Positions 3,280 through 43,329 are shown, numbered from the stretch's first letter. The stretch is 64,000 nt of DNA from Epiperipatus broadwayi (GCA_028023455.1 JAQFVV010000008.1:1922001-1986000), one strand, 5' to 3'. Translations and numbers: made by a program. Notes: generated by a model not told the origin, from the sequence alone.

Positions 3280-5230
3280 CATTGTTTTGTTTTTCTTTTG
3301 CCTATCTAATATGTAAGCCATAGGGAAGTGATTCTACTTAAGGATCTTCGATCTGAGTAATCAACTATCTTGTTTGTTTTCGTAATTAGTTAAAATCATT
3401 TGATTTTGGCTAATTCACGTTATAGTTCTTATAGGTATGATTTTAGTTGTAAGTCCAACTAAAGTGGCTTGTTTGCTTGATAATTAACTGATCTATTTTT
3501 TTTTGTTATAACCACTTGCAGTTTTAATCACTGTAAAGTTGGTTATAAGCTATTCCAGCAAGGTCCACTAATGTCATAAAACATTAGTTATATTGAAATC
3601 TAGATTATTATTTTCATAAAGAGAAATAAAATCAATTTTTTTGATATATGTTAGTGGAATAAGACGTCAAATTAGTCTTATTGGAATTGTTTATTTGATA
3701 TCCATTTTTAAATAAAATGTTTTTATTTAAAATCTTTTTTTGTAAAGAAGCAAACAGATATTTATTCCCTATATATCTCAGTCAGGCAAATGTTTATACC
3801 TGCTGCTGGATTATCAGCTTGTACTAAATGTGCAAGGATAATTTTAAAATCCGTGATCATTTAATGTTCAAATCATTTTTGTTTTATTTTAAAGGAAAAT
3901 AAATGTAAACAAACGTAGAAGTATATAAACTAAACAATGTAAAAGATAACCGCTAATATAAACTCATCATAAACTTATATAATTATAAAAGTTAATTTAA
4001 AGATTGTATTTTTTGTTTTCTGTTTTTAAAGAGCTTGAATTAAAATAGTAATGTAAAATGCTTAATGATTTTTAAATATATATATAACTAAAACTTCCAG
4101 TGTTCTTCGAATCATTTTTATTTATTTTATTTTAAATTATATTTTGATTTTAAATGTATCAATCAATCAATCACCCAAGTTCTCACTAAAATATATAATT
4201 AAAAATGAATCTCATGCTGGCACAGTGAAAGTAAAGGAATTCGATCGTATCGTCGAGAAAGGCTATTGATTATTAGATCTTTTACCTGGGGATATAGGTA
4301 AATAGGGCAGAATCCACGATGTACCTGACTTATATATCTTGTATATGGTCGGACTCGAGGTACTTTACCTGTGTTCAGGGGTTTGTTGGATTGATATGCG
4401 TTTTTTGACCGGTACAATATAAAAAGATTCCACTATGTAAAATGCACTTGCTTAATTTGTTATAGAAAATAAACTTTTAGGGGAAAATCAATCATTTCTT
4501 TTTGATTTTGAAAAATACTGCATAAAAAAGTTGTTGATTTTCATACAGCTTAAGTTAAACATCGCTGCTTTATAAAAATTTAAGTTTCATTTCCTATTAA
4601 AAATAAACTTCAGCTTAAAATTTTAATTTTATTGTTTCTGGATTATGCAAGCATTTGAGAAATTTGAATAATTTAAATTTTGTTTATTTTTTTTCTAAAA
4701 ATGTATCATGGATAGAAAACCGATCACATGGTCTTCCTTTTTTTACAATTGCTTTTTTTTTTTGTTTTCATTTTTTAATTAAATTAAAGAGAATAAATTT
4801 TTAATACAGAATTGAAAGTTTATTATTTTATGTTCATGTGCAATTGAGACTATATATGTATTACACCTTTCACTTAGCTTTTCATATTTTAGCCTGATTT
4901 TTAAATAATTCAACCTTTTCTTTACTGTATGCCCTGCAGAAATTGTAATCTGAATATATCGTTGCAATGCTATGTTAGCTGACTTAAGTATTATAAAAAA
5001 GGGTGCAAATTCAAGCAACTTGGATTAATGACAGTGTACCTATATCATTTTCTTAAAAAAGTAATTTTTGTAAAATTATAAAACATGTATATATTATTTG
5101 GTATATATTATAATAATTGTATTGATAAAAAATCAAGTCAGATGACCTAATTTTAATAAAGCTTGTATTTACTAATGTTATATATAGAGTAAATAAAAAA
5201 CAAACTCTTAACAAGCTTCAAAAACCCTCA

Positions 5231-5272
5231 ACCCCAGACCGCAGTTTCTGCATCTAACGTCATCAGTGAGGT
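5231..5272 (-). ncRNA. Hammerhead, family B (inverted arm, slightly decayed)
   Basis: Minus strand reads ACCTCA CTGATGA CGTTAGATGCA GAAA CTGCGG TC TGGGGT. Confidence 0.75.
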
Positions 5273-5806
5273 GTTAGGGATTAAAAACACTAAAACTAGT
5301 CTAGCATTTTATCAATGCCTAACTATTGAGAAGAAAATCTGAAACCTTCAGACATTTAAATGTCCAAAAATCCAGCTATCTAACTCAAATAGCTGTATGG
5401 GACTGAACCAAAATCGCCAAAGCCTTAATAGCAAAAAACTAAAATTAAATTGATAAAAAATCAAGTCAGATGACCTAATTTTAATAAAGCTCGTATTTAC
5501 TAATGTTATATATAGAGTAAGTAAAAAACAAACTCTTAACTCTTAACGAGCTTTATTAAAATTAGGTCATCTGACTTGATTTTTTATCAATTTAATTTTA
5601 GTTTTTTGCTATTAAGGCTTTGGCGATTTTATATTGCTAGAGCTATTAATATATGGTGTATCTGAATTTGGTTCAGTCCCATACAGCTATTTGAGTTAGA
5701 TAGCTGGATTTTTGGACATTTAAATGTCTGAAGGTTTCAGATTTTCTTCTCAATAGTTAGGCATTGATAAAATGCTAGACTAGTTCTAGTGTTTTTAATC
5801 CCTAAC

Positions 5807-5848
5807 ACCTCACTGATGACGCTAGATGCAGAAACCGCGGTCTGGGGT
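5807..5848 (+). ncRNA. Type-I hammerhead ribozyme, family B
   Basis: ACCTCA-CTGATGA-C GC TAGAT GC A-GAAA-CCGCGG-TC^TGGGGT. Helix I extended by CCCT/AGGG. Palindromic helix III ACCGCGGT. GUC cleavage after 5842. Helix II is only 2 bp. Confidence 0.8.
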
Positions 5849-6747
5849 TGAGGGTTTTTGAAGCTTGTTAAGAGTTTGTTTTTTTACTTACTCTATATAT
5901 AATATAATAATTGTAATATGCATTACTTGTCTTTTTTATGTAGAGTAATGATTAAAAAGATTAATTAAGAAAATAAAAAGTTTGCAAATTTATTTTATAA
6001 ACTATTAGAAATAAATTTTTTTTTTTAATATATATTAGATACTTTTATAGACTGTGCACTAAAAACAAAAAAGAAACAATTGTTTCTTCAACCACAATTG
6101 GAGTTTTTAGATTTAACTTGGAATAAAAGCATGGGGGGTATCAGAAATTAATTAAATCAATCCCTAAAATATCTCAAGTTAAATCTAAGAATGCCAATTG
6201 TGGCTGAAGAAACAATTATTTTTTTAGTGCATGGTCAATAAAAGCTTTAATATAAATTTTTTTTTAACCTCTATTATTTTTTAAGTTTTTAGTACTGGCA
6301 CAGGAAATCAAAATGTAAAACTATATTGTACTTTAAACTGATTGGACATTTATAGTTGATGCATATATTGTGCTGGATGCTCCGCAGAATGATTTTACTT
6401 ACACTGTAAATGTTTTGGCTGGTTTCAAACTTCTTTATAATACATTTATAATCTTATTTAATTATAAATGTTACGTGAACGAACTAGCATGTTCGAGCAA
6501 AATGGGAAAGATTATTGATAGCTTTAACTATCAACAATACCCATGATCAGATTGTGGCCCATCTCGGCTGCTAAATTCAAACCCCTACTATCCAAACACT
6601 TTATTTGTTTCGGAGTAAACCCCGGGCTCCAGCTAGTTTAAGACTAACGTATTCGGACAGTAGGCTCATAATCCAGCGCTCGAAACAATCCCAAAACTAG
6701 CCCAGTCTAATTTTAATCAATAATAAAATATAGTCTAATTAGTGGTG

Positions 6748-6816
6748 ATAGAATTGACCGACAAAATAAGGTTTAAATTGGTAAATAGAATTGACCGACA
6801 AAATAAGGTTTAAATT
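6748..6816. repeat. Short tandem duplication
   Basis: ATAGAATTGACCGACAAAATAAGGTTTAAATT occurs twice. Confidence 0.85.
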
Positions 6817-8528: not shown

Positions 8529-8624
8529 CTGAGATAATCCACAGCTTCACAATCTCCAAAAGAAGTCGGATATGACTTTTTCATTTTTATCTTGTACCCC
8601 AAATGTTCTACATGTCAAAGGCAT
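8529..8624 (-). other. Candidate internal exon of an unidentified minus-strand transcript
   Basis: Acceptor tttttgttttag| and donor CAG|gtaaga. No full-length open frame from this acceptor. Product not recognised. Confidence 0.3.
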
Positions 8625-8979
8625 CTAAAACAAAAAGATTCATCCTAATAAAAGATACAAAAGAAATCATCATTGCAATTGGCTTCTTGTCTATCTAAAA
8701 CTAGAAATTGTAGGCTACTGTCTATATCACTGATAAAATGAGTTTCATCTCTTCATTTTATATTTTTTTGTATATAACAGTGATGTTTATATTCTTTATG
8801 GTCACCAGTGATGTTTATATTCTTTATGCAAAGAAGTGATGCTATCTTGTTATATTTATTGAACCACATAGATATAATTTATTTGCATATAGTCCATTTG
8901 TTAGCTATAGACTTGAAAATAATGTTATGAAACATATAGCAAAACCAAAGCATGAACAAGAATAAACAAAAACATAAAC

Positions 8980-9400
8980 AAGAATCAGAATTTGATTATA
9001 TGTTTGTGTATGCAATATTTGTATACATTTGATTAGTTTTATAACTCATTACTTGTAAACCATATTATTTTTATAAAATAAGAATCAGAATTTGATTATA
9101 TGCCTGCGTATAATTATAAATTATTATACTTTTTGAAAATCATTATTTTTATAAAATAAAAATCAGAATTTGATTTTATGCCTGCGTATAATTATAAATT
9201 ATTATACTTTTTGAAAATCATTATTTTTATAAAAATAAGAGGATTAGTATAGATAGAACGTTAGAAAATTATGACAGATATGAATTCTATATGAGCATAA
9301 ATAAATATATAACTATAAACTAACACACTAATTTTTCGATAGATATGAATTCTATATGAGCATAAATAAATATATAACTACAAACTAACACAGACTAATT
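8980..9400. repeat. Cluster of local tandem duplications (~80-bp and ~55-bp units)
   Basis: AATCAGAATTTGATT(A/T)TATG occurs three times. ATAGATATGAATTCTATATGAGCATAAATAAATATATAACTA occurs twice. Confidence 0.8.
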
Positions 9401-14711: not shown

Positions 14712-14739
14712 ATCACATTAACGACAATCAGTCTGGATT

Positions 14740-19580: not shown

Positions 19581-21113
19581 TAGCAAATTCATTTTCATGT
19601 GTTTATCAAAAAAATATTATATTTATTATTTATTCATGTATTTTAATTTTAATCTATCACAATGCAAGCTATATACAAAATGTACTTTATATAAATGTCT
19701 GAATATAATTCAATTAATTACAGTAATTGAATCTTTTTTTACAAGTTGGAGAGTGACAGCCATACAGATTTCACTGCTGGAATTTCATTCAACATGTTGT
19801 TTTTGCATTGTATATTTTCAATTATTCAATTATTTCTTATGTCCAACTTATGCATTTTACCAGGACTCCAATAGAAAAATTATATTAATTTTCAGCCATG
19901 CTTAGAATATAAATGATACAAATGAGTTAAGAAGTCAATAATATTTTGCCATTGCAATGATAGAAATATTTTTTGCAAAAGATTTTGATGTTAACAAACT
20001 GCTACCAGAAAACTTAATGGGACATTCTAATACTACAACTCCAAAAATTAATTACTGCAACGATAATAGAATTAATAATGCTAATAACTCACACTTCCAC
20101 AACTAATAACAAAAGATTGAGAATTCTTAAACCACCGCTATTTTTCATAATCATATTTATTAATAAATTTTATTACAATCATAGACGTAAATATTCACAG
20201 CTACCAAGAATACAAAAATTTTGAAATTTCAACACATTTACAACTGATAAAGTAGGTTTATTAAGTTTTTTAAAATCTTTAATTATATTATAAATATTAA
20301 TTCAAAGGTTATCACAAACAATTCTTGAAATAAAGTGGAAATAATATGACTTTAGACCTTTACATACAATGATATTAAAAAAAAAAAAGATACTTGTTAA
20401 GTTGGTTATCACCTGACACAGTATGACTATCTGAGCATTTACATAATAGAAGTGAATCATTAGTAAAGAATCTGACAAGCATATTAATATTTCACACTTA
20501 ATATTATAAAGTAGTTCTTTAACATGCTATACACTGGGAGTACATCAAAACTGGTGACAAAAATGTTAATCATGATAAACAATATTTGCAATACTTGTAA
20601 ATCATAAATTACTGAATTTTAAAATTATCCATGTGTATGTATATATATATATATAGCTAATAATTGATTGCACAAGAAAATATATAAATCAGTACACATT
20701 TGGCTCTTTATTTTCAGTTAATATGTAAATGCAAGCAAAATATTACATTATTTCTAAAAAAAAATACTATAATATATAAAACAGAAATTTTGTTTTTTTG
20801 AGCAAATGTTGGCTTCCTAAAGACTTTGACATCTAAACAAAACATGCATTAGAATTAATTTATCAAATCTCAGAGTTCTCCTAACTTAGTTTTAACATCT
20901 GTTTTAAAAAAACACCAATCTATCTACCTTGATAAATCTACCTACATTATCTATGTAAGCATAAATTATCAGACACATCAAATACTGGACTAGTTTTTAA
21001 ATATTGGCCTTCATTAATCAAATTAATGACCTGAGAATTCCAATGTCCTAAAGTTTATGAACCCAAGTCATACATCGAATTGCTAGATCATTGATTCACT
21101 ATTAGAGTAACTT

Positions 21114-21908
21114 CACATGATCACTATTTCTTATGCTTGCTCTAAACTGTTATTAAAACAGGCAAAACTCTCTATACGTATTGCCACTCAGTGCAAGCCA
21201 GAGTAATCAATGGATGCCAGAAGGCTTGTGCATAAAATCCCCATAGACTACTCATCCAATATCCCCAGACTAGTTCCTGGCTTGTGGCCTTCGTCAGTGA
21301 GGAGCCTTGGATCTGACTGATGGTCACAAGCCAGAAACTAGTTTGGGGATATTGGATGAGTAGGCACTAGATGGGGATTTTATGCACAAGCCTTCCGGCA
21401 TCTAGGGATTACTCTGGCTTGCACTAATTGGCTATACGTAGAGAGTTTTGCCTGTTTTAATAACAGTTAAGAGCAAGCATAAGAAATAGTGATAATGTGA
21501 TGTTTATTGGCTTAAAACTAATCCTGCCTAATAGGATAGTGGTGGTTATGATTATTAAAGAACCAAAGACACCAAAATGTATAGGTACTTGAACTGAGTT
21601 CAGACCTATATGACTATATAAGCTGATGAGCTTGGATTGAAAATATAGTGTTTCAATTTAAGTCTCGTAGTTTTATAGTTAAGTAGAGATAAAAGATGGC
21701 TGATGGGGGGTTGCATTAGATCCTAAGATCTAGGTGCCTCACAGATCCAAGGCTCCTCACTGACAAAAGCCACAAGCCAGAAACTAGTCTGGGGATATTG
21801 GATGAGTAGGCACTAGATAGGGATTTAAAAGCACAAGCCTTCTGGCATCCATTGATTACTCTGGCTTGCACTGAGTGGCAATACGTATAGAGAGTTTTAC
21901 CTGTTTTA
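21114..21908. mobile_element. Family A hammerhead retroelement insertion (13-bp TSD)
   Basis: TSD ATTAGAGTAACTT at 21101-21113 and 21909-21921. Inverted arm 21114-21316, then ~1.3 monomers on +. Hammerhead motifs at 21262-21303 (-, GAAA>GGAA), ~21317-21348 (+, truncated) and 21754-21795 (+, CTGACAA). Confidence 0.92.
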
Positions 21909-22229
21909 ATTAGAGTAACTTAAGAAATTAAAGAATATATATATATCTTTCTAAACACAAACTCAAAAAGAGAATTCTTCTATATACAAAGACATTATTT
22001 ATAAATTGATAGCTCTATTTCTGCAGAAATTTAGTTTAATTAGAAATTCAATAAGCTTGATCATAAGTACTTTACATATACACATTCAAGGATGAATGAT
22101 TACTGCACAGACTAAGAGAAAAAAAAATCTATGTAGTACTTCAACAACTGTATTTTTGGAACATAAATTCCAAAGATAAAAAGACAACAAATAGTTCATT
22201 ATTATTAAATAACGCAATGATTAATCAGA

Positions 22230-24620: not shown

Positions 24621-25302
24621 TTTTTTTCCTTAAATAATTTATTAAAAACTTTTAATGTGTTATTTTAAAAAAGTATTTTTGAAAATAAAAGTAAAAAAAA
24701 AAATTAAGATAATCTGCATTGCACATAATCTTCAGTTACTTTCTTGTATAAACCACTCTACTGCTGAGTTTCCATGGGTTTGTGAAAATGAAAATTTCTT
24801 GAATTAAATGGACAAAAAAAAATGCATACTATTTTTACATATTAATAAGTCAAATTAGTTTGTTCAATAATTGAAGATAACTCAAGTATTTGACTACATT
24901 AAAAAGACAAAAAGCAACATTCCAATTAGAGATTACAAGTTATTAAAATTTTGATCATTAATCCTTACGCATGAATTTGTTATTAGTAATATTATTTAAT
25001 CTAAGACATCTAATTGTCGAATGAAAAGTTATCACACTATCTTCTAACCCTCTGTTTCTGTATATTCTGCAAGAAAAGTAGTTAATTTTATATACATTTT
25101 TTTAAGATTCGTATATAAATCTTCTCAATTAAATTAATAAGTACTGTATCTATATTTATAGACTCATAAATACAAATTTCTGTATTTGGAAGTCAAGCAT
25201 GTCTTTATCAGAGACAACCAAAGTTTTGGTTTTTGCTATCCATATGCCATTAAGAAAGCCACAAATATCACTGCTAAAAATAAACATGACAAATAAATGT
25301 TA

Positions 25303-27164
25303 CATCATCATTTCATATGCTTACATATGCTGTTAATAAGAGTATCCAACTCTCCATACCATAGTGCCACAAGAGCAAGCCTTCATAATTAATCAAGGAA
25401 TGCAGGAAGGTTTGTGGTTAAAATCCCTACCTAAGGGCTACTTATATAACACTTGCTGACTAGTTTCTAGCTTGTGGCTCTCAAATCAGGAGCCTTGAAT
25501 TTAAGAGTACTGCACTTAGATCTTAGGATCCAAGGCAGCCCTCCAGCAGCCATCTTTTACCCATTTGGTTAACTATAAAGCTTGGACCACAAGATGAAAA
25601 CACCATGTTTCAAACCCAAGCTCATTCGCTTGTATAATCATATAGATCTGAACTCAGTTCAGCATCGATACATTTTGGTATATTTAGTTTTTCAAAAACC
25701 ACAGTCTCCATTATCCTATGGACAGGATAGGTACAAAACCATCAAAACATCACGATAAACATTTCGTATGCTTACATATACTGTTAATAACTGTACTAAA
25801 CTCTCCATATAGTAGTGTCACAAGTGCAAGCCTTTGTAATCATTGATGCAAGAAGGTTTGTGCATAAAATTCCTATCTAGTGCTTGCTCATCCAACATTC
25901 CCAGACTAGTTTCTAGTTTGTGGCTTTCATCAGTGAGGAGCTTTTGATTTGTGAGCACTGCACATAGATCTCAGGACCCAATGCAACCCTCCCCAGCCAA
26001 CTTTTACTTATTTGGTTAACTATAAAGCTTGGATCCCAAGATAAAAACACCATGTTTCCAACCCAAGCTCATTCGCTTATATAATCATATAGATTTGAAC
26101 TCAATTCAACATCTATACATTTTGTGGTGTCTTTGGTTTTTCAAAAACCACAGTCATCATTATCCAATGGACAGGATAGATATAAAACCATCAAAACATC
26201 ATGATCAGAATTTCATATGCTTACATGTGTTGTTAATAGGAGCACCAAACTCTCCAAACAGTAATGACACAAATGCAAACCTTTGTAATCAATAGATGTA
26301 GGAAGGTTTGTGCATAAAATTCCTATCTAGTGCCTACTCATCCAACATCCCCAGACTAGTTTGTAGCTTTCATCAGTGAGGAGCCTTTGATTTGAGAGTA
26401 CTGCATCTAAATCTTATGATCCAATGCAACCCTCTAACAGCCAGCCACCTTTTACCTATTTGGTTAACTATAAAGCTAGGAGCCTGAGATGAAAATGCCA
26501 TAATGTTTCCAATCCAAGCTCATTCACTTGTATAGCCATATTGATCTGAACTCAGTTCAGCATCTATACATTTGGGTGTCTTTGGTTTTTCAAAAACTAG
26601 TCTGGAGATGTTGGATGAGTAGGCACTAGATAGGAATTTTATTCACAAAACTTCCTATCTCCACTGATTACAGACTTGCACTTGTGGTACTGCTGTATGG
26701 AGACTTTGGTACCCTTATTAACAGCATGTGTATCTATGAAATAGTGATGTTTGATGGTTTTATACCTATCCTGCCCATAGGATAATGATGACTGCGAGTT
26801 TTAAAAAACCAGAGAGATCAAAAATGTATAGATGCTGAACTGAGTTCATATCAATATGACTATATAAGTGAATGAGCTTGGGTTGGAAGCATTATGGTGT
26901 TTTTATCTTGGGCTCCTAGCATTATAGTTAACCAAATAGGTAAAGGTAGCTGTTGGAGGGTTGCATTGGACCCTAAGATCTAGGTGCAGTGCACTCAAAT
27001 CCAAGGCTCCTCACTGATGAAAGACATGAGCCAGAAACTAATTGGGGAATGTTGGATGAGTAGGCACTAAATAGGGATTTTATGCACAAACCTTCTTGCA
27101 TCCATTGATTACAAAGGTTTGTACTTATGGTCCTACTATATAGAGAGTTTGGTATTCTTATTCT
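25303..27164. mobile_element. Family A (diverged subfamily) insertion: ~3 tandem monomers (-) plus ~1.3 monomers (+)
   Basis: TSD CAAATAAA(T/C)GTTA at 25290-25302 and 27165-27177. Hammerhead motifs at ~25455-25492, 25898-25939 and 26348-26382 (-), and ~26592-26608 and 27008-27048 (+). Spacing 446, 450 and 441 bp. Confidence 0.9.
25898..25939 (-). ncRNA. Family A hammerhead, catalytic core intact
   Basis: TCCTCA CTGATGA AAGC CACAA ACT A GAAA CTAG TC TGGGAA. One mismatch each in helices I and II. Confidence 0.7.
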
Positions 27165-30100
27165 CAAATAAACGTTATTTTCAAAAAGTGTAAAAATCAA
27201 ATTATTTTAATTCAGTTATTTTTTTAAATTCTTTGAAATACATTTCAGTTTAAAGATTGGAAGGGGAATGGGAGATATTATGTTAAGAGTTGAGAGCAGG
27301 ATTAATATAATCTGATAAAAAGTAATATATTTGAAATTTATTCTCATTGATATTTCACCTAGATACTTCCAATTTTTTTAAAAATAATATATACTATTTT
27401 TTTTAAATATTTCAATATGTACAGTTTTAAATTAATTTGCTTATTTTCATTAATTATAGAGGATTTGAACTCAGACTTTGAAGCAACCTTCAACTATTCA
27501 AACTATCTCATACTATATTTACAATTAAGTTCCAGGTATAAGAATGCCTGTATTTAAAATCTTCAAAATACTAAATTATTTCTTTTTACATTTTTAAAAA
27601 AAAATCAAAACTTTATATTGCTTCATTTCACAATTTAATTAATTTTGATGCGTGTTTTATTTCAAACTACTTAAATGGGTCATATCTCTAAAATTAAGAG
27701 CCCAAGACAGCAAGATTACTTGAGAAAAATCATCACAGTAGTCACATGTGTAGTGTAGGTGCATCTATTATTAGAAAACTACATACTTATTTATATTGGA
27801 TTATTTTCATCATCTAATATAAGTATTGAATGTCTTTAGAAAAACTTTTATATAAATATTTCAAATGCATTCAACTGTTAGTAATAGCCCACAGGTTAGT
27901 TTAGAATATTTAAATAAAAGTTAAATTTTTCTAAGGACATTCAGTACTTATACTAGATGATGGAAATAGTTCAATATATAAATACAACTAAAATATCATC
28001 ATTACAAACCTTCAGGAAAACACTACAGAGTTATATATATATTTTAATTTTTTTTACAAATTTAATAAATTACACATTCCAGATTTTTTTTTATTTTTAT
28101 ATTGGCCAACTTTAGCAGCCTTTGTTAGCTTTTAAAAATATAAAATTAGGACTACTGGGATATTTATGTATACCAAAATGTGAACAGAACTTATATATTT
28201 CTTATGACATGATTTAATTTACAATTGTATGCTTGCAGATTAATTTGTGTTAAAATATGTTGGCCAAATAATGAAAGATGATGAAAAGATTTGAAAGAAG
28301 TGGGATCTGGGTTAACAAATGAAACTAGTCTACCAGAAATATATCTTTGGAGGTCATTTTTCCATTTCTAATGTATTTGTTCACTATGTTTAACAGTTTT
28401 CATATATATATAAGTATTCATATAAATACAATGAGAGACCAACCTTTTTTCATGTTGATCAAAAGAATGAAAACTGCAAAAATTCTAAATGCATATTCTA
28501 ACCTTAAATTTTTATCCAACTAGCTAAATAAATTCACTGATGCATCCTAATTTTAAATTAATTTAACTTAGTGGCAATAATTCATTTCTACCTAATAAAT
28601 AAATAACTATTATTTTGAGACTCTGATTAAACGAATATAGATTTATAAATGAAAACGCTACATAAATGAAAACGTGGACTATGCTCGGTGGTCGGTTAGT
28701 TATAAAAATTCAGCTGCAGAGATATGCAGTTAAGATAAAGAAAGAAATTAAAATCGTAAAATAAATTATCATCAGTAAATAAATATCTTGAGAAGAGAGA
28801 GAAACTGCAATCATTCCCTAATTAATAATTTAGAATAAAAATAACATTCTCTGAGCTATAAGTATTTGCACCTTTAAATAATAATGATAACTTCTCATGT
28901 TTTTGTTAAGGTTTTTTTTAAAAATATATCTTACAAGCAAATTATTTGACAATATAATCTGAAAATATCTTTCTTATAGCACAATTGAAAATTAAACTCT
29001 TTTATGCCACAACATAACTATAATATCAATAATAATCGATCACTTCTTAAATAAGGAATAATGATAATAATAATCTCAGGGTTTCTTTGTTTACTTTAGG
29101 AAAATACTCTACAGTACTGTGCTGTCACACATGACTGGCACTCTGGTAGGCTATAGGAAATATTCACTTCACTTAAAAGCTAATGTGTCCTCCCATATCA
29201 TAACAACTACTATAACCATTTAAAGGGGTGATAAATATGATCAATAATGATATAAATAATTACATAAAATTTTGAATAATACAGCCTTTTTATCCAGAAT
29301 CTCAGCCAAAATAATAGAAAGACAAGGGTACCTTTTGTATCCTTCCATCATCCATGACAACACAATAAATTAACTAAACTAATTAATTCAACAATTTAAC
29401 TAAATATAACTGGAATAATGTGCAGTCAGGATTAATAACTTAGAAATAAATTCATTTTCCTATTAAATAATGCTTAATCTGAAGTTTGCAATTCCCATAA
29501 AATAATTATCATAAAAATAAAATGTTCAGATCTGCATAAGTTTATTTATCTGGTATATTAATATTTCTAAAGTTTGAAATAATTTAGGACTCAAGAAAAA
29601 TGTTTTGCAAATATTTTGTAAACACACTTATACTTGGCATATAAAAAAATAAATAAATTGACAACGAATATTGAAAAAGACTACAATTTATTATCAACAC
29701 AGAATGAAACAAAATACACAAATTTATTAAATAATATAACATTGATACTACAAATACATTAAGCTGTCCTCTACTAGGATATAAATTAAAATAATAAATT
29801 CCTATATGTTTGGAATCCAGCTAGTATACTGGAGTAACTAGCTAAAATGTGCAGCTGATTTACCACTACACTGATTTATAATTTTTATAAACTTTCTATA
29901 AAATAAATCTCTAACTTTTAATTATATGGCTAACTAATTTTTTTTATTTTTTATTACTATTACGATATGAAATACATAAAAGTAATTGCATATTATTTGT
30001 GTAACCTAATAAACTGGGTTCAAATACAATTCTTTTAAAATATTAAATTTATTACTAATAAAGTTAACCAAGTTACGGTTTATAATTAGACAAATTATGA

Positions 30101-33100: not shown

Positions 33101-35008
33101 AAGATTTAATGCTATAGGAAAGACAAGAAATACTCCAATAAAAAAAAATCACTATCAAATAGGTTCCCTCCCCCAATAAAGCACACACATACACAAAGAA
33201 AACTAAAATAAGGCAATATGAACTGAAAAAAAAAAGTATAAGAAAAGCAAAACAAACCAAAAAAAGAATGCAGACATGTTGAGAAGTCAAGTAAGGCAGA
33301 AAAAAATTAATAAACAAAATTAAAGAGTATTAGTCTTGATACCAGCTAGAATGATGTGAAAAAGAATCAAGGAAATATGAATTAGGTCATTTATTAGCTA
33401 AACAATGGATTATGTAAAAAAATCTAATAATGAAAAGTAGATTTAGACATTTCATTTCAAATATAATTAGAAAATTAGAACAATATCCAATAAAAAAAAA
33501 AAGGAATTTGGCTTCATACAAAATAATAATAGAATAGAAATTGTCCTTAGATTGAAAATCAAGTTTCTAAAAAACAATTGTGGCAATATAAGAAATATTA
33601 CCATGTTAAAAAGGATCAATGAAAAAATTAAGATTTAAAAAAATTTTAATCAAAAATTAATTTTAAAATCGTTTCAACAATCTTTTTAGAAATGAAAGTT
33701 TGATTTTTAAAAAGTTAAATTTAACTATTAAGTTAATATTATACTGTATTATTGAATATTTTTCTGAAAATGTCAATAGTTGCTGAAGTAACTAAAAAGA
33801 AATTTTGCCAATAAACAGATATTAGAAAATAATTGGAATGTATAAATCAGTAAAACAGTAAACTGATTTATATATAATAAAGAATTGATGTATATTACAG
33901 AAAAAAAAAGAGAAAAATAGGAAAAAAAAATCCAGAGATTAATAGAAAAGATATTAGATAAAACAACATTCCACTTAACTTGACAACAGTCAATTTGGGG
34001 GGTGGGATAGTAATCATTTATAAAATTTTGGTAAAAGATCAAAACTATATTAAAGAAAACACATCAAGAAATGCATTATGGTAATTGATCAAAAGCCTTA
34101 CAAATAACAAAATCACAAACTTTTTGATAGACAAACTCCTTAAATTATTTAGATAAAAGATCACCAGTAAAGAAATTATTTAAAAACAAAACATACAATT
34201 TATTATTTAATAGACATAATTTGTTTTCTAAACAAGGGAAAGAAATATAAGAGCAATAGAAGGATATTTAAAGAAAAAACACATTACAATGTGTAATTCA
34301 GAAAATTTATAATTTCTAAAAAAAAAAAAAAAAAGCTTAAAAAGTCAGCAAAAAATTCAGGTTATTGAGTTAAACATTTATTTTTAGCGCTGTCAGCGTC
34401 ATTCATTCAGATATCGTAAACAGTAGTTTAAAGTGAGTAGTCTATCCTCACACTTTCACTTACAGTACTTAAGATTTGCCCATATATAAGCATTTGGGTT
34501 GGATTGAATAAGTGGATTCATTTTATTCTTTCCTAAATACTATATCTTGTGTTGGAAGTGGAAGTACTCATTTATTATTTAACACTCGTGAAAAAGCGCA
34601 GAATAGCTTAAATGGCTGATTAAATTTGTTACTGAGTTAAGTAATAATCAATATGCTAAACAATTATTTCCTTAATGAAATAAAAAAAAATGTTGCAAAC
34701 TATGATTATTTGCAGCAAGAATTCTGAAATCACTTCAAAAATTCGAAAGCTGGATTCTGCAGCCTGATGGATAAATATGGAACAGCTAATTTTAGGATAC
34801 CAAAAGTTGTATTAACCAGATATCTATCACACAGATGCTAGAATTATAACAACTTTTTTGGCCTCAGAAAAATCTGATTCCCAAAGCTCCAGTCATAAAC
34901 GTTTTCTGGAAAAACAGAATATATAAATGATGAACAACAAACTGAAGAGGTCCATAGCATATCCCAGAGAAAAAGTGACTCATTCTCTCTCCAACCAGTC
35001 TGTAGTAT

Positions 35009-35599
35009 TGGTGTTAAACCACTAAACATCACATGATCACCATCTCATGCTAGCACATAACTGTTAGTAAACAGGCAAAAATTCTCCATATAGTAGTGCC
35101 CCCTTGTGCTAAACAGAGTAATCAATGGATGCCAGAAGGCTTGTGCATAAAATCTCTATCTAGCATGAGATGATCTTGTGATGTTTAGTAGTTTAACACC
35201 AATCCTGCCTAATAGGATAATGGTGTCTATGGTTGTTAAAGAGCCAAAGTCACCAAAATGTATGGGTGCTGAATTGAGTTCAGACCCATATGACTATATA
35301 AGCTATTGAGCTTAGATTGAAAATATTATTGTGTTTTCAATTTCATTCTCATAGTTTTGTAGTAAAGTAGAGATAAAAGGTGGCTGCTGGAGGGTTGCAT
35401 TAGATCCTAAGATCTAGGTGCAATGCTCTCAGATCTAAGGCTCCTCACTGATGAAGGCCACAAGCCAGAAACTAGTCTTGGGATATTGGATGAGTAGGCA
35501 CTAGATAGGAATTTTAAGCACAAGCCTTCTGGCATCATTGATTACTCTGGTTAGCAGAAGGTGGCACTATTATATGGAGAGTTTTTGCCTGTTTATTTA
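35009..35599. mobile_element. Family A insertion (13-bp TSD)
   Basis: TSD CAGTCTGTAGTAT at 34996-35008 and 35600-35612. Inverted arm to ~35165, then about one monomer on +. Confidence 0.92.
35442..35483 (+). ncRNA. Family A hammerhead, catalytic core intact
   Basis: TCCTCA CTGATGA AGGC CACAA GCC A GAAA CTAG TC^TTGGGA. One helix I mismatch. Confidence 0.78.
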
Positions 35600-37646
35600 C
35601 AGTCTGTAGTATGTTATATAATAATATAATTTAGCTACTCATCACAAAAATTTTAAGATGCTAGCCTGTTGGATTAAGGGTTATGACATGGAATGAGATC
35701 TACATTTTATAACAAATTCCTACTGAAATATGTGAAATGATTCCAACTGTGTATGGCAATGGAGCCATTAGCTGCAAGCATGTTTTCAAATAACTTGCAA
35801 GATTTTCGTGAAGGCAGGGAAGGCATTGATGATGCACTACAAAGATACGAAACATATCTCATTTCATATAATTCGTGATCTAGATACGATAGCACTTTAA
35901 AATTTTTAGAGTGAGAATAGCTAAACTATGACTTAATGTAATATATATTTATTGATTTAGAGATAGGGGTTTCTGGCAGCTTAGAAAAAAAATCCAGACT
36001 TCTTTTCTCTGGGACACTCTTTGTGCATAAAAAAGCAAATGTCATAAACAACATATAAAAAGTATAATCATAACTATTCAATATCAAGCTAATATAATGA
36101 TTAATTAATTAATGAACATAATGATACATAGAATTTATTTAAATATTACTACATTCAAACTTCTAAAAGCTACTGCTATGTGCTTCTTGTCAACCAGATG
36201 AATAGTTTTATCCAATAAAACAAAGTATCCAACCAAATTATCAAATTTAACATTCTATATCTAGATTATAATTAAAAATGTTTCTGAAAAAAACAATCCA
36301 TTGCCTCAGTTAACATCTATTTACCGACATGTCAGCTAAAAAACTATAGAAAGAATATATTGTGATCTCAATAATTTTCTAATTCTACTACCATAAATAT
36401 CGATATAATAGCATGGAAAAACAAAAATGTCAATACTGACACTTTATCATTATTATTAAATTTTCACTGCCTATTAGAATAAATATCTGCTTTGAACTTT
36501 CTTTTTATTTGAATTATTTAAAAAATGGTTGGCATAACAACTAATTCAAAAAAGATCAACAAAACTGAATACAATACCAACCCTATGTTTAGGGATATCT
36601 TTACTGGTACAAGTTTACATGCAGCCTATTTTAGCTGCCGACATTTTATAACACATTTCACATTAATAACTTTACTGGAATGTGAATAAAGAGATATCGA
36701 GTGTAACCTCAAGCATGTCATTCGCAATGGGTTGACTTGGAAGCACGAGTAAGAGAGTTGAGGTTTGATCAGACATAGGGTATTACTATCCTGACTTGGT
36801 CAGCTTTTGGTATCTGGCTCGGACTCTCGGTCTATTGAGCAAGCAAAGTATGTGGTGCACAATAACCAAAATTTATAAATGATATGGCCACAAAGATTTA
36901 CATTTACAGTAGAAAAATAATTTGAATTAAAGTTTTAATTATGATACATAATTCTTGACAAATGGTGCTTTTGACTTTAAATTGATCAAATTTGTAATAA
37001 ATACATAATTGTATCAAAATTATTTATTTCTCTTCAAAAAATCATTTGAGTTTTTAATGAGGGAATATTTAATATTTCACCATAAACATTTACTGCCATT
37101 CTTTGATTTTGTTTGACGGCACTCATAGTGAATTTATTTCCTTATTTTCAGAAATTTTTGTTTCATCTTCACATATAACTAACTGATTATTTTAAAAAAA
37201 TTATAATGCTTTGACAATTTATTAACTTATTTTTTTGGTATCAACAGTCTTTTCTAATTTTTACCCATAGTTGAGGGCGAAAAAATCATTAATTAGTTTT
37301 GTGAGTATAATTCCAAAATAGACAAAATATGCAAATACATTATTTAAAAATGAATAAATAAGGTATTTTTTTCAATCAAGTAAAAGAAGAGTCAAATATT
37401 TTCTTGATAAACCACAAACTGTTAAACATATTCAGTTTTCTGAAACAATGCTATTTTTTAACTGTATTTTGTATAGACTATAATAAATGATTTTTTCATT
37501 TTTATAGAATAAATTATATCATTATAATTGCAGATTTTTTTAACAATTAAAAATCAGTTTCATCTCATGATCCCAAAACTACTTCAGGACATTATTTTTC
37601 TTCATGATCATGTTCTAATTCATACAGCATTATTATGTGTATTTAA

Positions 37647-37850
37647 GTAATTTAGCTTGCGCTTTACGCAAAAAAGTGAAGCTTGTCTCAATCTTCTTAC
37701 AAGTTATATGGCTAAGTGCTTTCAGAGACCTTGGGTCTCCATAATCATAGCCTATATAACTTGTAAGAAGATTGAGACAAGCTTCACTTTTTTGCATAAA
37801 GCGCAAGCTAAATTACTTACTATTTAAAGGTGAAGTAGAAAACTAGTATT
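37647..37850. mobile_element. Short foldback insertion (element D) with 14-bp TSD
   Basis: TSD TTATGTGTATTTAA at 37633-37646 and 37851-37864. Near-perfect ~68-bp inverted arms plus an unpaired ~34-nt right tail. Confidence 0.8.
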
Positions 37851-37929
37851 TTATGTGTATTTAAATATATACACTCTGAACGAACCGAAACCAAGTCCAG
37901 GGACTTAACAGGTTGTATAAATCATTTAT

Positions 37930-38118
37930 TATTTCTGTATGCCTACAGGTCAATATATAGATTGTTAAATTGTATATCTGTTAATTAATAATATAAACCT
38001 CTGATATAGATATATTAAATACTAAATTTTAATCATATTAGTTGTAGTTTTTACTAGGAGATAAATTTAGATCTCATGCAATATGAAGAGCTAGAATTAT
38101 GCTCCCAGACATAGCAAT
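37930..38118 (+). repeat. Diverged direct repeat (partner ~45203-45380), possible LTR remnant of the old gypsy element
   Basis: TATTTCTGTATGCCTA...CAGACA(T/A)AGCAA is shared by both copies. The first copy is followed by a PBS-like TTGGCA. Termini and TSD not resolved. Confidence 0.45.
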
Positions 38119-40629
38119 TGGCACAGTCCTGATTTAAACCTGCTTTAACAGCCAGATTTATGTGTATAGAACAATCGGCTAAAATGCAATTGTCAATCGA
38201 AGAGTTCAATGTCAGTGAGGCAGGTAGTTGGCCCCTGTATGCCCAACATGTCAAAAAATCTCTTCATTACGAGAGTTGAAGAGGACAAGATTAAAATAGC
38301 AACAGTATTACGTTTTGCTGGTAAAGAAGATATAGAGATAGCAAACAGGCTCTCAGAACCCTGAAGATTTTTCATATGATCAAATTAAAGATTGATTACT
38401 AAATTATTTTAATCCCCATCCCTCTAGGCATATTGCCAGACTTCATTTCCATGACTGATATCAGAACAGAAATAAAAAAAGGTAAAAGATTACAATATTG
38501 CTCATCATAACTTGGCAAAAAATTGTGTCTACGGATCTTTCCTCAATGAGGTCCTTCTAGAGCAATTTCTAAGGGATATAATTAGTGATAATTTAAGGCA
38601 ACACATTGGCAGATAGCAATTTAAAATTATAATGAAGCTATAAAACATGGGATAGCTTATGAATTAGTTCTCGAGCAATCTTGTAAGTTTGCTGAGAACA
38701 GTAATGCACAACATTTGTAAAATGCATAAACTGATTAAAAAAAAAAATGGCCATAAGGTCAGAAATTATTTCCATAAGAGTGAATATTGCAAAATTTGTA
38801 AAACAACAAAAAAAAAAGGTCGCATTGAAACAATGTGTAAAAATAAAAATAATAAACCTGGCAAAGAAAGAAATAGCTGTATGGGTACATTCAATAGACA
38901 GGGAAATCAATTAGCCAATACAAAAAATACATCGACCACTGAAGTGACAAAATAATGCTAAAATTAAAAATGTGTGACCAACTCATATCTATGGAGGTCG
39001 ATAGTGATGATAGCGATGTATCTCTAATCTCAGTCTGGGAATGGTTTTCTGTAACTTCAAATTATATTAAAACCATGGCAATAGAGAAAACAGACCTAAA
39101 AGCCTTGGATGTAAATGGAAATGCTATCAAAATTAAACAAAAAAGTCTTTGTGAGTAGAATAGAGGGAAAAGAAGTCAAGTTACCTCTATACATAGTGTA
39201 TGCTCCGATTAATCCATTGATAGGCTGGAATTGGTGCAAAAAATTGGGAATAAAACTCATCTTTGTTAAAAAGATTGAAATTGAAAAGTAAGCAAGACAA
39301 ATTTCCTAGGTTGTTTAATGGAGAACCAGGTAAATTAAAATGACTTGTTTCATTAGAAGTAATCCCCGAGGTGATACCTATAATTTGCAAACTGCATAAG
39401 GTTCTGTTTGCTCAGAAAAAAAAAGTAGAAAAGGAAATTAAAGAATTAGTTAAGAGAGGCATGTCAGAACCCACAGAAAAATCTGATTGCACAATGCCAT
39501 TAGTAAATATTACTAAACCCAATGAAAAAATTAGTTTGTGTGCTGACTATTAAGTATCAGTAAAGCTATTAGTAAAAACACATACCCTGTTCCTAAATTC
39601 TAGAGAAATAATAGTGTCTCTGCAGAAATCACATACTGATCACTGAGAAAGCCACAGAAATATTAACATTAATCACATATATAGGGTTATTTAAATGCAA
39701 CAGGCTTCCATTTGGGATAATTTCTGCCCCCCGGCAGCTTTCAGTCAAAAATTGAAATGCTCCTTAGTGAAGTTGAAGGTGTGTCATTCTATTTTTTGAC
39801 AACATTCTTGTTACCACTACTTTGTTTACATAAAGTATGCAAAAAATTATGAATTCGATGCAAAGCTTAATAACCAAAAATGTATCTGGAAAACTAATTT
39901 TATACCATATCATTTCTAAAAACAGCACACCTCCTGCCCCAGAAAAGGCTAAACCTGTAGCAGAACTAATAACATTAAACAATTTCAAGTTTTTTCTGGA
40001 ATCCGTAAACTATTTTGAAAATTTTTTGGATGGGAAAGCTAATATTGCCAGACTTTATATGATTTTCTTAAAAAGAACCAAAAATCGAAAGGAAAAGCTA
40101 ATCAAGAGAAAGCATTTTTACATACAAATTCATTGTTAACTTCAAATAAATTATTAGTGCAATATAATAGCAACTTGGAAGTTACTTTTACTACTGATGC
40201 ATCTGATTTCAGAGTTGGAGCAGTGCTATGGCACTGCACAGTCAGGTAAATGACTCATTGCCTATGTTCACAAACCTTGCCCAAAGAGGAGAAAAATTAT
40301 AGTCAGCCGGTCAAGGAAGCTCTTGCAATAATATTTGGCATCAGAAAATTTCATCAATACACTGCACAGTCAAGTGAATGATCCATTGCCTATGTTCACA
40401 CACCTTATCCAAAGTGGAGAAAAATTATAGTCAGCTGTTCAAGGAAGCTCTTGCAATACTATTTGGCATCAGAAAATTTCATCAATACTTGTACAGATGT
40501 AGATTTACTATAATAACTGATCAGAAACCCTTACTTGGTATTTTAGAGCAAACATGTTCCTGAATATCTTAGCTCCTGCATGATAAGATGGCTCAATATT
40601 CTGTCAGGATATGACTATATATATTCTAG

Positions 40630-40808
40630 AAATTAAAACAGGCAAAACTCTCCATACAGTATTGCTACTCAGTGCAAGCCAGAGTAATCAATGGATGCCA
40701 GAAGACTTGTGTATAAAATCCCCATCTAGTGCCTACTCATCCAATATTCCCAGACTAGTTTCTGGCTTGTGGCCTTTGTCAGTGAGGGGCCTTAATGATC
40801 GTGATGTT
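40630..40808 (-). mobile_element. Short family A insertion inside gypsy RNase H/integrase linker (8-bp TSD)
   Basis: TSD TATTCTAG at 40622-40629 and 40809-40816. Hammerhead 40747-40788 (-, CTGACAA). Short inverted tag at the 5' end. Confidence 0.9.
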
Positions 40809-41600
40809 TATTCTAGGGAAAGCAAATAGGGCATGCTGTCAATCTATCTCATATACCTTACCAGTCAGAGACCGATAAAAGGGAAATAGAAATTAACTAT
40901 ATCTATGTACTAAAAAATTAAACCCCTCAATAGAACAATAGTAGCTGCATGATCAGAAGATGACATCTACCAATGGATTATAAATCAAATTAGTATAGAT
41001 TGGCCTAAGTAATATCTAACTATGGAATGCTCATGAGCAGTTGTCCATCTGCAAAAGCTGCATTCTGAAGGGCAATTGTTTGCAAATCACAGTTAAGGGG
41101 AGAAATCATATTCTTAAGTTATTGCATCAAGATCATCTGGGCACTGTTAGGGCAAAGGCTTTAGCCTGTACTTATGTCTGGTGGCCAAACATTAACACTG
41201 ATATTGAAAAATATATATCTAAAAAAATGTGGTAACTGTCAATCATGCACTAAAGTGCTGCCATCAAAGTTTGAAGAATAGACAAAAGCTAGAGATCATG
41301 GCAAGCGTATCCACATTGATCACTGTGGCCCAATAGAGGAACATTTATTTTTAGTAGTCATAAATGCATATTCAGGGTGGTCCAAATATAATATTAGTTC
41401 AGACAAAATCCTTGATAAATTATAGAAATTTTTTTCAGACCATGGTCTCCATGAAACTTTAGTTTCAGATAATTGAACTGGCTTCACATCCGAGAAATTT
41501 GAGGAGTCTATACAAATAATGGGAGATAAAACATTTACACATGCCCCCTTACCACTCTCAATCTAATGGGATTGGTTGAAAAAGCCATGCAAACAAGTAT

Positions 41601-42921
41601 GGACCACCATTTCTAATGCTTTCTCGTAACTTATTAAAACAGGCAAAACTCTCCATACAGTAGTGCCACTCAGTGCTAGCCAGAGTAATCAATGGATGCC
41701 AGAAGACTTGTGCATAAAATCCCTATTTAGTACCTACTCATCCAATATCCCCAGACTAGTTTCTAGCATGTGGCTTTCGTCAGTGAGGAACTTTGGATCT
41801 GAGAGCACTGCACCTAGATCTTAGGATTTAATGCAACCCTCCAGCAGACACCTTTTATCTCTACTGAACTACAAAACTATGAAAATAATATTGATAACAC
41901 AATATTTTCAATCCAAGCTCATTAGCTTATATAGTCATATAGGTCTGAACTCAGTTCAGTACCCATATATTTTGATGTCTTTGGTTCTTTAATAATCATA
42001 GACACCACCATTCTATTAGGCAGGATTGGTATTAAACCACTAAACATTGCATGACCACCATTCCTTATGCTTGCTCATTAAAACAGGCAAAACTCTCCAT
42101 ACAGTAGTGCCACTCAGCGCAAGCCAGAGTAATCAATGGATACTAGGTTTGTGCATAAAATCCCTATCTAGTGCCTATTTATCCAATATCCCCAGACTAG
42201 TTTCTAGCTTGTGGCTTTTGTCAGTGAGGAGCCTTGAATCTGGGAGCACTGCACCTTGATCTTAGGATCTAATGCAACCCTCCAGCAGCCATCTTTTATC
42301 TCTACAAAACTCCTCACTGACGAAATCCACAAGCTACAAACTAGTCTGGGGACATTGGACGAGTAGGCACTACATAGGGATTTTATGCACAAGCTTTCTG
42401 GCATTCATTGATTACTCTGGCTTGCACTGAGTGGCACTATTGTATGGAGAGTTTTGCCTGTTTTAATAACAGTTATGAGCAAGCATAAGAAATGGTGGTC
42501 ATGTGATGTTTAGTGGTTTAATACCAATCCTGCCTAATAGGATAGTGGTGGCTATAGTTATTAAAGAACCAAAGACATCAAAATGTATGGGTACTGAATT
42601 GAGTTTAGACCTATATGACTATATAAGCTGGATTGAAAATATTATTGTGTTTTCAATTTTATCCTCATAGTTTTGTAGTAAAAGGTGGCTTCTGGAGGGT
42701 TGCATTAGATCCTAAGATCTAGGTGCAGTGCTCTCAGATCCAAGACTCCTCATTAACAAAAGCCACAAGCTAGAAACTAATCTGAAGATATTGGATGAGT
42801 AGGCATTAGATAGGGATTTTATGCACAAGCCTTCTCGCACCCATTAATTATTCTGGCTTGAGGTGGTGTCTTGCACTGAGTGGCACTACTGTATGGAGAG
42901 TTTTGCCTGTTTTAATAATTT
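41601..42921. mobile_element. Family A insertion inside gypsy integrase: tandem (-) plus tandem (+)
   Basis: Probable TSD AAGTAT (41595-41600 / 42922-42927). Hammerheads at 41748-41789 and 42189-42230 (-), and 42311-42352 and 42747-42788 (+). Spacing 441 and 436 bp. Host integrase resumes after 42921. Confidence 0.92.
41748..41789 (-). ncRNA. Family A type-I hammerhead, best-preserved copy
   Basis: TCCTCA-CTGACGA-A AGC CACAT GCT A-GAAA-CTAG-TC^TGGGGA. Helix I extends via ATCCAA/TTGGAT, CTC/GAG and GTGC/GCAC. Confidence 0.88.
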
Positions 42922-43329
42922 AAGTATTCCATTAACAAGGAAGCAATATTTACTGCACTGCTTTATCTGCATTCGACTCCGGCTGCTAGATCACCTGCTG
43001 AAATATATTTAAGTCGAAAGCTGCAGACAAATGATCAAACATTGTACCGACAGCGGATCATAAAGATCATTTATATGTTTACATCTGAGGAAAGAGTGTG
43101 GGTTAAAAATAAACAAATTCAGGTTGCATACTATAATTATACATCAACTATTAACTCATTAGGTGCCGAATTTTTTTGGGAAAACAGGGAATTAATTTTA
43201 TTGGTCAATTACCTAAAAATCTGAAGTAATGCTATTCATCAATTTTTTGTTTAGAGTACGCTTCTATTCAAAAAATTACAACCTTCAATAAACAGAACTG
43301 TTTTAATTTAGCTTATAAAAATAAAGTTA

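Follow-up and report, generated by a model that had tools for sequence, protein, structure and literature searches.

Foldback insertions of non-coding hammerhead repeats resemble products of Penelope-like retrotransposition

The mechanism of Penelope-like elements (PLEs) is the least understood among eukaryotic retrotransposons. For L1, Ostertag and Kazazian are said to have described twin priming in 2001, in which synthesis from the second nick reportedly begins inside the same RNA, so that an inverted 5′ segment is joined to a direct 3′ segment within one duplication. The internal priming site of L1 is essentially random and microhomology-dependent, and inversions are a minority outcome. Insertions of PLEs are partial tandems with an adjacent inverted, 5′-truncated copy, a tail of 30–40 bp at one end and short target duplications (PMC8557442; PMC3846280), and the pLTR sequences of PLEs alone suffice for mobilisation in trans (PMC3846280). 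A purified PLE protein (PAc from Anolis) cleaves and extends both strands in vitro (Frangieh et al. 2024, PMC11167929). Reverse transcription by this protein begins inside the RNA, at a pair of adjacent sites some 85–92 nt past the hammerhead cut, and without any target homology; the tail corresponds to the sequence that separates the two starts, ribozyme cleavage is unnecessary, and no start-site difference between strands was reported (PMC11167929). Metazoan non-LTR retrozymes consist of tandem, non-coding monomers that are AT-rich and carry a type I hammerhead; they have duplications of >4 bp and very high copy number (PMC7229834; PMC7761336; 10.64898/2026.07.22.740005). Mobilisation by Penelope-like elements, with multimeric cDNA as intermediate, has been proposed for them (Cervera and de la Pena 2020; De la Pena 2020; Li et al. 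2026 preprint), and a model in which circular retrozyme RNA is reverse-transcribed into multimeric cDNA is published (PMC7761336).

The stretch of Epiperipatus broadwayi DNA analysed here (64,000 nt, hereafter the window) carries seven foldback insertions from three families (A, B and D) of non-coding, hammerhead-bearing repeats that are retrozyme-like or pLTR-like. Their monomers (449 nt in family A, 330 nt in family B) lack ORFs and contain one hammerhead each; the family A monomer slightly exceeds the usual retrozyme range of about 170–400 nt. When a natural family A monomer (window:42468-42916) was used as BLAST query, exactly five loci were found in the window: 21114-21910, 25303-27164, 35009-35599, 40630-40808 (sense on the minus strand) and ~41600-42918, referred to below as 21k, 25k, 35k, 40k and 41k (direct arm, 42k). 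The predicted ribozyme of family A is a minimal type I hammerhead, the core, helices I and II and GUC site of which were identified by a motif scan and by alignment of 12 monomer copies. In this alignment CUGAYGA, a short helix II, GAAAC, UAG and GUC precede the cut, an A-U pair of helix II is changed to G-C at 10.2/11.2, and the motif is intact in most copies and mutated in several. With Rfam models, at gathering as well as permissive thresholds, no hammerhead was detected. Family A words also occur in contigs of RNA-labelled runs, where the element-to-flank depth ratio is below that of DNA runs; such contigs cannot reveal circles, and carry-over of DNA is possible.

Every family A insertion consists of an inverted and a direct arm. 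In the 21k insertion the inverted arm (21114-21316, minus strand) runs from monomer position 267 to 449 and on to +38, its tail occupying 21114-21151, and the direct arm (21317-21910, plus strand; 1.3 monomers) crosses the monomer junction at 21461/21462 and ends with GTTTTAAT, 121 nt past the GUC at 21789. The 25k insertion, of a diverged subfamily, has an inverted arm of 2.9 tandem monomers (25303-26593, minus strand), the outer end of which is equivalent to monomer position 41, and a direct arm (26594-27164, plus strand) that reaches the homologous CTTATT position and then carries two additional nucleotides. At 35k, the inverted arm (35009-35165, minus strand) covers monomer positions 340 to 449 and continues to +57/59, thereby including a monomer junction missing from the direct arm (35166-35599, plus strand); the latter is about one monomer long and has a canonical CUGAUGA hammerhead with the predicted cut after 35477, ∼121 nt before the end. 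The direct arm at 40k (40632-40793, minus strand; monomer 275-449) likewise ends 121 nt past the cut site, set off from the duplication by two extra nucleotides (40630-40631), and the inverted arm is only ∼15 nt long (40794-40808, plus strand; monomer ∼27-43) and represents tail sequence missing from the direct arm. Finally, the 41k inverted arm (41601-42304, minus strand; 1.6 monomers) has its outer end at about monomer position 35, with a left boundary uncertain by a few nucleotides, and is followed by the 42k direct arm of 1.4 monomers (42305-42918, plus strand), which ends with GTTTTAAT(+AA). The inverted arms reported in the first-pass annotation are real, with lengths of 15 (40k), 157 (35k), 203 (21k), ∼704 (41k) and ∼1291 nt (25k); direct arms comprise 1.0–1.4 monomers, inverted arms up to 2.9, and the monomer junction is crossed.

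The inner junction between the arms is different at every locus, which indicates that each foldback was formed anew rather than from a master foldback. The two arms of one insertion have private variants in common (35k and 21k are examples), which assigns both to a single event. Since the inverted arms at 35k and 40k hold tail or junction sequence absent from the direct arms, their template was RNA rather than the opposite arm.

Target-site duplications were assessed against 5,000 random position pairs. Of the four 13-bp repeats claimed in the first-pass annotation, three are exact, with P ≤ 0.0004 each: TATAATAATTGTA at 5109-5121 and 5903-5915 (13/13, P = 0.0004), which flanks the family B rather than a family A insertion; ATTAGAGTAACTT at 21101-21113 and 21909-21921 (13/13, P = 0.0004), the first 2 nt of the right copy overlapping the element end; and CAGTCTGTAGTAT at 34996-35008 and 35600-35612 (13/13, P = 0.0002), where CAGT, the first 4 nt of the right copy, is likewise present in the template immediately beyond start site 1 (see below). 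The fourth, CAAATAAATGTTA at 25290-25302 and 27165-27177, matches at 12 of 13 positions by reading. The two shorter repeats claimed fared differently: the one of 8 bp adjoining start site 1 at 40k (TATTCTAG, 40622-40629 and 40809-40816; 8/8) withstood the comparison (P = 0.036), whereas the one of 6 bp at 41595/42922 did not (P = 0.26; 5 nt off the element end) and is therefore regarded as unsupported. Nor could it be verified via the integrase frame of the host Ty3/gypsy remnant, because protein homology ends at 41576 and does not resume past the insertion. At five of the seven insertions (three with an exact 13-bp repeat, one with 8 bp, and 25k with 12/13 by reading), the whole foldback is bracketed by a duplication; that of family D (see below) was likewise found by reading, and the P values cover the three exact 13-bp repeats and those of 8 and 6 bp. 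Duplication length is not constant across insertions (8–14 bp). No clean empty-site joint was found in the contig layout; the only DNA sample with the unique flanks is probably the source of the assembly.

One arm of all five family A insertions ends at GTTTTAAT or its diverged equivalent (start site 1), with a precision of 0 to +2 nt plus 0–5 extra bases. In public contig collections, the 21-nt end motif turned up only as a chance match in a bacterial metagenome contig, and viral contigs contained none. The fixed 3′ end postulated earlier for this family is thus borne out, as is its internal position: it lies 121 nt 3′ of the predicted GUC cut site at 21k, 35k and 40k, and 133 nt past that site in the 42k copy, where there is a 13-nt insertion. 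What had been taken for a variable or simply truncated 5′ end is, in contrast, also fixed. The outer ends of the inverted arms fall 35–59 nt further along the monomer, at positions 38 (21k), 41 (25k), 59 (35k), 43 (40k) and ∼35 (41k), and only the inner junction varies. By our own calculation, five ends placed at random on a 449-nt unit would share a 25-nt window with a probability of ∼5 × 10⁻⁵. The inverted arm, too, stops outward at a set position (start site 2), which yields the classical Penelope tail (PMC8557442; PMC3846280); each insertion therefore has two fixed starts, and only the junction between its arms varies. The tail between the two sites is confined to one arm (35–59 nt in family A, 58 nt in family B and 34 nt in family D), and one site is found at each end in seven of seven insertions (P about 0.008 under equal use, likewise our own calculation and from a small sample). 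Homology of target to template as the cause of the fixed end was not significant at any of five sites. A conserved hairpin is only faintly hinted at by a single 6-bp stem spanning the start site, for which seven sequences show two compensatory changes. A GGTCATSTGA box ∼30 nt past site 1 is common to families A and B, which may be chance; overall similarity between the 3′ modules of the two families was not significant.

The same layout recurs in families B and D despite their unrelated sequences, with duplications of 13–14 bp and a tail of 58 nt in B and 34 nt in D. The family B inverted arm (5122-5540, minus strand) amounts to ∼1.3 of the 330-nt monomers, the tail beyond start site 1 making up its outer 58 nt (5122-5179), and meets the direct arm (5541-5902, plus strand), which carries the hammerhead at 5813-5842 and ends 58–60 nt past the cut site, at a palindromic AAGCTT. 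The foldback has 221-nt arms that are 98% complementary. This single locus is a young insertion, with a 35-nt indel between arms otherwise 98.7% identical. The family D foldback (37633-37864, minus strand; element 37647-37850), absent from the first-pass annotation, is flanked by the 14-bp duplication TTATGTGTATTTAA (37633-37646 and 37851-37864) and contains a hammerhead-like motif with an A3-U8 core (37748-37714) and a 34-nt tail (37817-37850).

In the most likely reading, to which we assign a probability of roughly 0.75, PLEs supplied the reverse transcriptase and the GIY-YIG endonuclease that inserted these foldbacks in trans, with priming at two sites. We infer the enzyme and the priming on both strands as follows. 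The enzyme would nick the target twice, usually 13–14 bp apart, which would give rise to the target duplication, and each exposed 3′-OH end would then serve as a primer on the element RNA, reverse transcription beginning at an internal site defined by sequence. Synthesis from one nick would begin at site 1, which in family A is the GTTTTAAT position and lies 121 nt downstream of the hammerhead cut; from the other nick it would begin at site 2, 35–59 nt further 3′, thereby generating the one-sided tail. Both cDNAs would extend toward the RNA 5′ end over variable distances and meet head to head, the place of this inner junction varying and in some cases coinciding with a short palindrome. Because the copied sequence is continuous across the cut site and the monomer junction, the template was probably uncleaved multimeric or religated circular RNA. 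The 41k insertion, which is without a convincing target duplication, counts against a PLE origin, as does the result that no Penelope reverse transcriptase or GIY-YIG gene was found within the window. A further point against it is that seven of seven insertions use one site per end, which simple independent choice of sites does not predict, whereas in vitro the strands were not reported to differ in their choice. This one-of-each usage, together with the 13- to 14-bp stagger across at least three sequence-unrelated non-coding families, tentatively suggests a narrower version, possible though rather doubtful, in which a PLE enzyme, acting as a dimer, would prime the two strands together in a concerted but asymmetric manner instead of choosing twice independently, and the elements would define a minimal cis-module, consisting of the hammerhead and ≤ ∼180 nt downstream, possibly with the GGTCATSTGA box of the tail.

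The first-pass annotation had proposed rolling-circle target-primed reverse transcription, in which a monomeric circle produced by hammerhead cleavage and ligation is copied from a fixed start for more than one lap, so that arms exceed one monomer. The internal start and the template unbroken across junction and cut site hold, but these data do not tell a circle from a multimeric transcript made by read-through at a tandem locus. Arms of 1.3–2.9 monomers spanning the junction and the cut site conform to a circle; moreover, they are without flanking or foreign sequence, which read-through transcripts might carry, and circular retrozyme RNAs and a corresponding model have been published (PMC7229834; PMC7761336). 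The divergence of 6–20% among monomers of one insertion would fit an identical start followed by decay, given the well-kept duplications, although divergence within an insertion and decay of its duplication fit the circle and the multimer model alike. The in vitro study, on the other hand, favours a linear multimer, ribozyme-dead templates having been inserted equally well (PMC11167929), and the 35-nt indel between the family B arms is easier to explain with two different monomer templates. Copying of a circle is regarded as rather unlikely.

More improbable still is self-priming, the snap-back model proposed for Penelope elements in 2013 (PMC3846280), in which a single cDNA or antisense template folds back and copies its own sequence into the inverted arm. 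Despite the fact that the head-to-head geometry and the palindromic inner junctions of some copies (AAGCTT in family B, helix I in family D) would suit such a process, the 35k and 40k inverted arms carry a monomer junction plus tail missing from the direct arms, and all inverted arms end at a defined site 35–59 nt past the direct-arm end, which copying of the direct arm cannot yield. An origin at the DNA level, either as a foldback/MITE DNA transposon or as two nested independent insertions in opposite orientation, has very little to commend it: inverted arms within duplications only superficially resemble terminal inverted repeats, the tail makes the ends asymmetric, and arm lengths and inner junctions vary by locus. 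For a foldback/MITE transposon, symmetric terminal inverted repeats and a duplication of fixed length are expected, rather than asymmetric ends and 8–14 bp, and two separate insertions are ruled out because a single duplication brackets both arms and because the arms share private variants.

Insertion by the PLE machinery, as had been suspected earlier for these loci, agrees with the published footprint, of which the insertions are a clean example; they represent no new kind of element or mechanism. The first biochemical data on two-site internal initiation date from 2024 and concern one lizard element, and natural footprints in an AT-rich, invertebrate-like genome that show the same two start sites lend in vivo support to the in vitro model. 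In addition, short and very abundant hammerhead repeats point to a compact RNA module.

Compared with L1 twin priming, the second start is fixed here and the foldback is the rule. Retrozymes have tandem hammerhead monomers, duplications and very high copy number in common with the elements described here, whereas a fixed internal end, a tail and foldback geometry are not described in the consulted passages of PMC7229834, PMC7761336 and 10.64898/2026.07.22.740005, and the predicted hammerhead is the minimal dimer-type Penelope variant with a 2-bp helix III and not a classical type I motif. With PLEs (2013, PMC3846280; Craig et al. 2021, PMC8557442) the likeness extends to partial tandems, a head-to-head inverted copy within one duplication (seven insertions of three families, the duplication at 41k being unsupported), a tail at one end and, within the repeated portion, a putative minimal hammerhead, as judged from the sequence. 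In contrast to PLEs, however, the elements have no reverse transcriptase/endonuclease ORF between the repeats and consist of non-coding 330- to 449-nt monomers, their tails are somewhat longer (34–59 nt compared with 30–40 bp), and the modal duplication is 13–14 bp, compared with 8–10 bp in the rotifer Adineta vaga. The comparison with PAc is between an autonomous element studied in vitro, which starts inside its ORF, and genomic footprints of non-coding elements, in which each end uses one site (7/7), whereas no strand difference was reported for PAc. Both probably have in common the extension of both DNA strands and a template that can do without ribozyme cleavage. They also share internal, sequence-defined starts without target homology, at two adjacent sites the spacing of which equals the tail, and roughly 60–120 nt past the cut site.

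In a BLAST search of the window with the 449-nt natural monomer of the non-coding hammerhead repeat family A (window 42468–42916, the ruler for all family A positions, position 1 being the base following GTTTTAAT), exactly five loci were found (at 21, 25, 35, 40, and 41–42 kb). The first-pass annotation had listed six loci with target-site duplications; five belong to this family, and the one at 5.1–5.9 kb is a separate family B, with a monomer of 330 nt and a hammerhead of its own. Duplications were first read directly and then set against 5,000 random position pairs of the same spacing. They matched at 13/13 positions for family B (5109/5903; P = 0.0004) and for family A at 21101/21909 (P = 0.0004) and 34996/35600 (P = 0.0002), at 12/13 (one mismatch) at 25290/27165, and at 8/8 at 40622/40809 (P = 0.036). 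The 6-bp candidate at 41595/42922 is unsupported (P = 0.26) and sits 5 nt off the element end. This last insertion (41.6–42.9 kb) interrupts a decayed integrase. Two family A copies, one at 40.6 kb and the other at 41.6–42.9 kb, inserted separately into a decayed Ty3/gypsy-like pol remnant (window 39950–41580; RNase H and integrase disrupted by stops and frameshifts).

Both outward ends of each insertion are defined, one arm ending at site 1 and the other, in inverted orientation, at site 2. In 5/5 family A insertions, one arm stops at GTTTTAAT or its diverged equivalent (site 1; 0 to +2 nt, with 0–5 extra bases), 121 nt beyond the hammerhead cut site in three copies and 133 nt past it in the copy bearing a 13-nt insertion, in agreement with the proposed fixed 3′ end downstream of the cut. 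Inverted arms were also found as described, with lengths of 15, 157, 203, ∼704, and ∼1,291 nt. Their outer end, however, had been taken to be variable and is actually fixed; at the five loci it lies at monomer positions 38, 41, 59, 43, and ∼35 (site 2), which is 35–59 nt further along the monomer than site 1. By our own calculation, the chance of five random ends falling within one 25-nt window of the 449-nt unit is ∼5 × 10−5. The sole variable point is the head-to-head inner junction, where the inverted and direct arms end at monomer positions 267 and 297 (21 kb), 88 and 307 (25 kb), 340 and 15 (35 kb), 27 and 275 (40 kb), and 202 and 274 (41–42 kb), respectively. Five of these 10 inner ends lie at 267–307, within or just 5′ of the hammerhead (cut at 316/317; window 21267–21325, 26594, 40793, and 42305), where ∼1 would be expected by chance in this interval, itself picked post hoc from a small sample. 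cDNA synthesis may tend to halt or switch in the ribozyme region.

In several public runs, loose ends, heterogeneous and AT-rich, were present among the best-supported rows both behind monomer positions 30–56 and at the site of GTTTTAAT; many other copies ending at both sites would give this pattern. On contigs from a DNA run (40.5–43.1 kb), the summed word depth, which is not an exact copy number, was 10^6–10^7 on family A versus ∼10^2–10^3 on the flanks, and family A therefore exists in very many copies. Family A words also occurred in RNA-labelled runs, where DNA carry-over is possible. Its 31-mers (40500–43100) were found in DNA and RNA-labelled runs under more than 10 coded organism labels; either family A is nearly identical across related taxa, or the samples share material.

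Every family A monomer contains one minimal type I hammerhead with a predicted cut after GUC, composed of helix I (CCUCA/UGGGG), the core CUGAYGA, a 3-bp helix II, GAAAC, and a helix III of 2 bp with a palindromic ACUAGU. Across 12 aligned monomer copies, the motif was intact in most and mutated in several; one helix II pair is A-U in one subfamily and G-C in another. Rfam models gave no match to this hammerhead. It is the dimer-type variant found in Penelope-like elements (PLEs; PMC7761336). The 10.1/11.1 pair, usually G-C, is non-Watson-Crick in both families, A·A in family A (window 21749–21812, 35436–35500, 41733–41794, and others) and C·A in family B; the adjoining family A pair covaries (A-U to G-C).

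The layout of family B and of family D, a foldback at 37647–37850 (204 nt; 37633–37864 with its 14-bp duplication) absent from the list in the first-pass annotation, follows the same plan. In family B, site 1 is 58–60 nt past the cut, and the tail, that is, the stretch between both sites, measures 58 nt. Family D has a 34-nt one-sided tail and a central hammerhead-like motif (AUGAUUA…GAAA) with A3-U8 instead of C3-G8 in the core; its inner junction cannot be placed because the foldback is centred on helix I. The apparent start of its tail-bearing arm is the first base past the predicted cut. The tails of families A and B, otherwise unrelated in sequence, contain a GGTCATSTGA box ∼30 nt beyond site 1 (window 42497–42506, 21113–21122, and 35029–35038 in A; 5138–5147, 5466–5475, and 5565–5574 in B), which could be a common recognition element or due to chance (rough estimate 1–7%).

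Because the inner junctions are unlike at every locus, each foldback arose in the course of its insertion, and a master copy already in foldback form is not their source. Private variants are common to both arms at 35 kb (TTAGCA and an additional T in a TTTT run) and at 21 kb (a deletion of ATACGTA), which, together with the single duplication bracketing both arms, indicates one event and rules out two nested insertions. Snap-back self-priming, in which the inverted arm would be a copy of the direct one, is spoken against by two loci: the 35-kb inverted arm holds a monomer junction missing from the direct arm, and at 40.8 kb the inverted arm, 15 nt in length, consists of tail sequence only, of which the direct arm has none. 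These arms were therefore copied from RNA, not from the other arm. Reverse transcription would be primed at a fixed internal site of the element RNA; similarity between target and template around site 1 was not significant, with microhomology of 2–4 nt in some cases only. All site-1 arms traverse the hammerhead cut site and thus the template was uncleaved or religated. It may have been circular or multimeric: repeats within a single insertion are 80–99% identical, which, given the preservation of the duplications, fits identical monomers that subsequently decayed and, equally, a heterogeneous template. The family B insertion is young; its arms are 98.7% identical except for a 35-nt indel, a finding slightly in favour of two distinct monomers having served as template.

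The window is AT-rich (G+C ∼27–30%) and has the aspect of animal DNA; among its coding sequences are pol genes of the Ty3/gypsy type and one ORF resembling Fanconi C. A Ty3/gypsy-type LTR retrotransposon (45739–50189) has two extended pol reading frames, one of 864 aa that includes RT and RNase H and one of 465 aa that includes integrase, and looks young because its flanking 138-nt direct repeats are 100% identical. The 521-aa ORF at 51653–53218, with a weak match to Fanconi anaemia group C (Pfam E = 3.7e-9), probably represents a host gene or else one large exon. Two further elements with inverted arms are family C (window 1–590; inverted arms 1–159 and 339–497, 95% complementary), truncated by the window start, and family E (63141–63565), in which 113-nt tandem monomers meet an inverted copy head to head, the two 118-nt arms being 95% complementary. 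The latter carries a CUGAAGAG-type motif, and its duplication is short or ambiguous (about ATTATTAA).

The layout of families A, B, and D equals the published footprint of endonuclease-containing PLEs: partial tandems (pseudo-LTRs, pLTRs), an adjacent inverted 5′-truncated copy, a 30–40-bp tail at one end, and short target duplications (PMC8557442). In one PLE example, an inverted pLTR is accompanied by a 31-bp tail and a duplication of 9 bp, and that work also shows trans-mobilisation of pLTR sequences by themselves (PMC3846280). With purified protein of an Anolis PLE, both DNA strands were cut and extended in vitro (2024; PMC11167929); reverse transcription began at two adjacent internal sites without target homology (85–92 nt past the hammerhead cut, as worked out from that study's numbers), the tail being the stretch separating both starts, and ribozyme-dead templates inserted as well as others (PMC11167929). 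The fixed internal priming proposed in the first-pass annotation matches this work and is not a new mechanism. PLE-driven mobilisation of non-coding hammerhead repeats has been proposed, as has the copying of circular RNA from such repeats into multimers by reverse transcription (PMC7229834, PMC7761336, and the preprint 10.64898/2026.07.22.740005). One start site per end was used in 7/7 insertions, which is the one point going slightly beyond the cited literature and, in this small sample (n = 7), hints at coupled asymmetric priming. The earlier observation is confirmed with corrections, its interpretation is borne out in part, and the insertions are a clean further example of the known PLE-type footprint.
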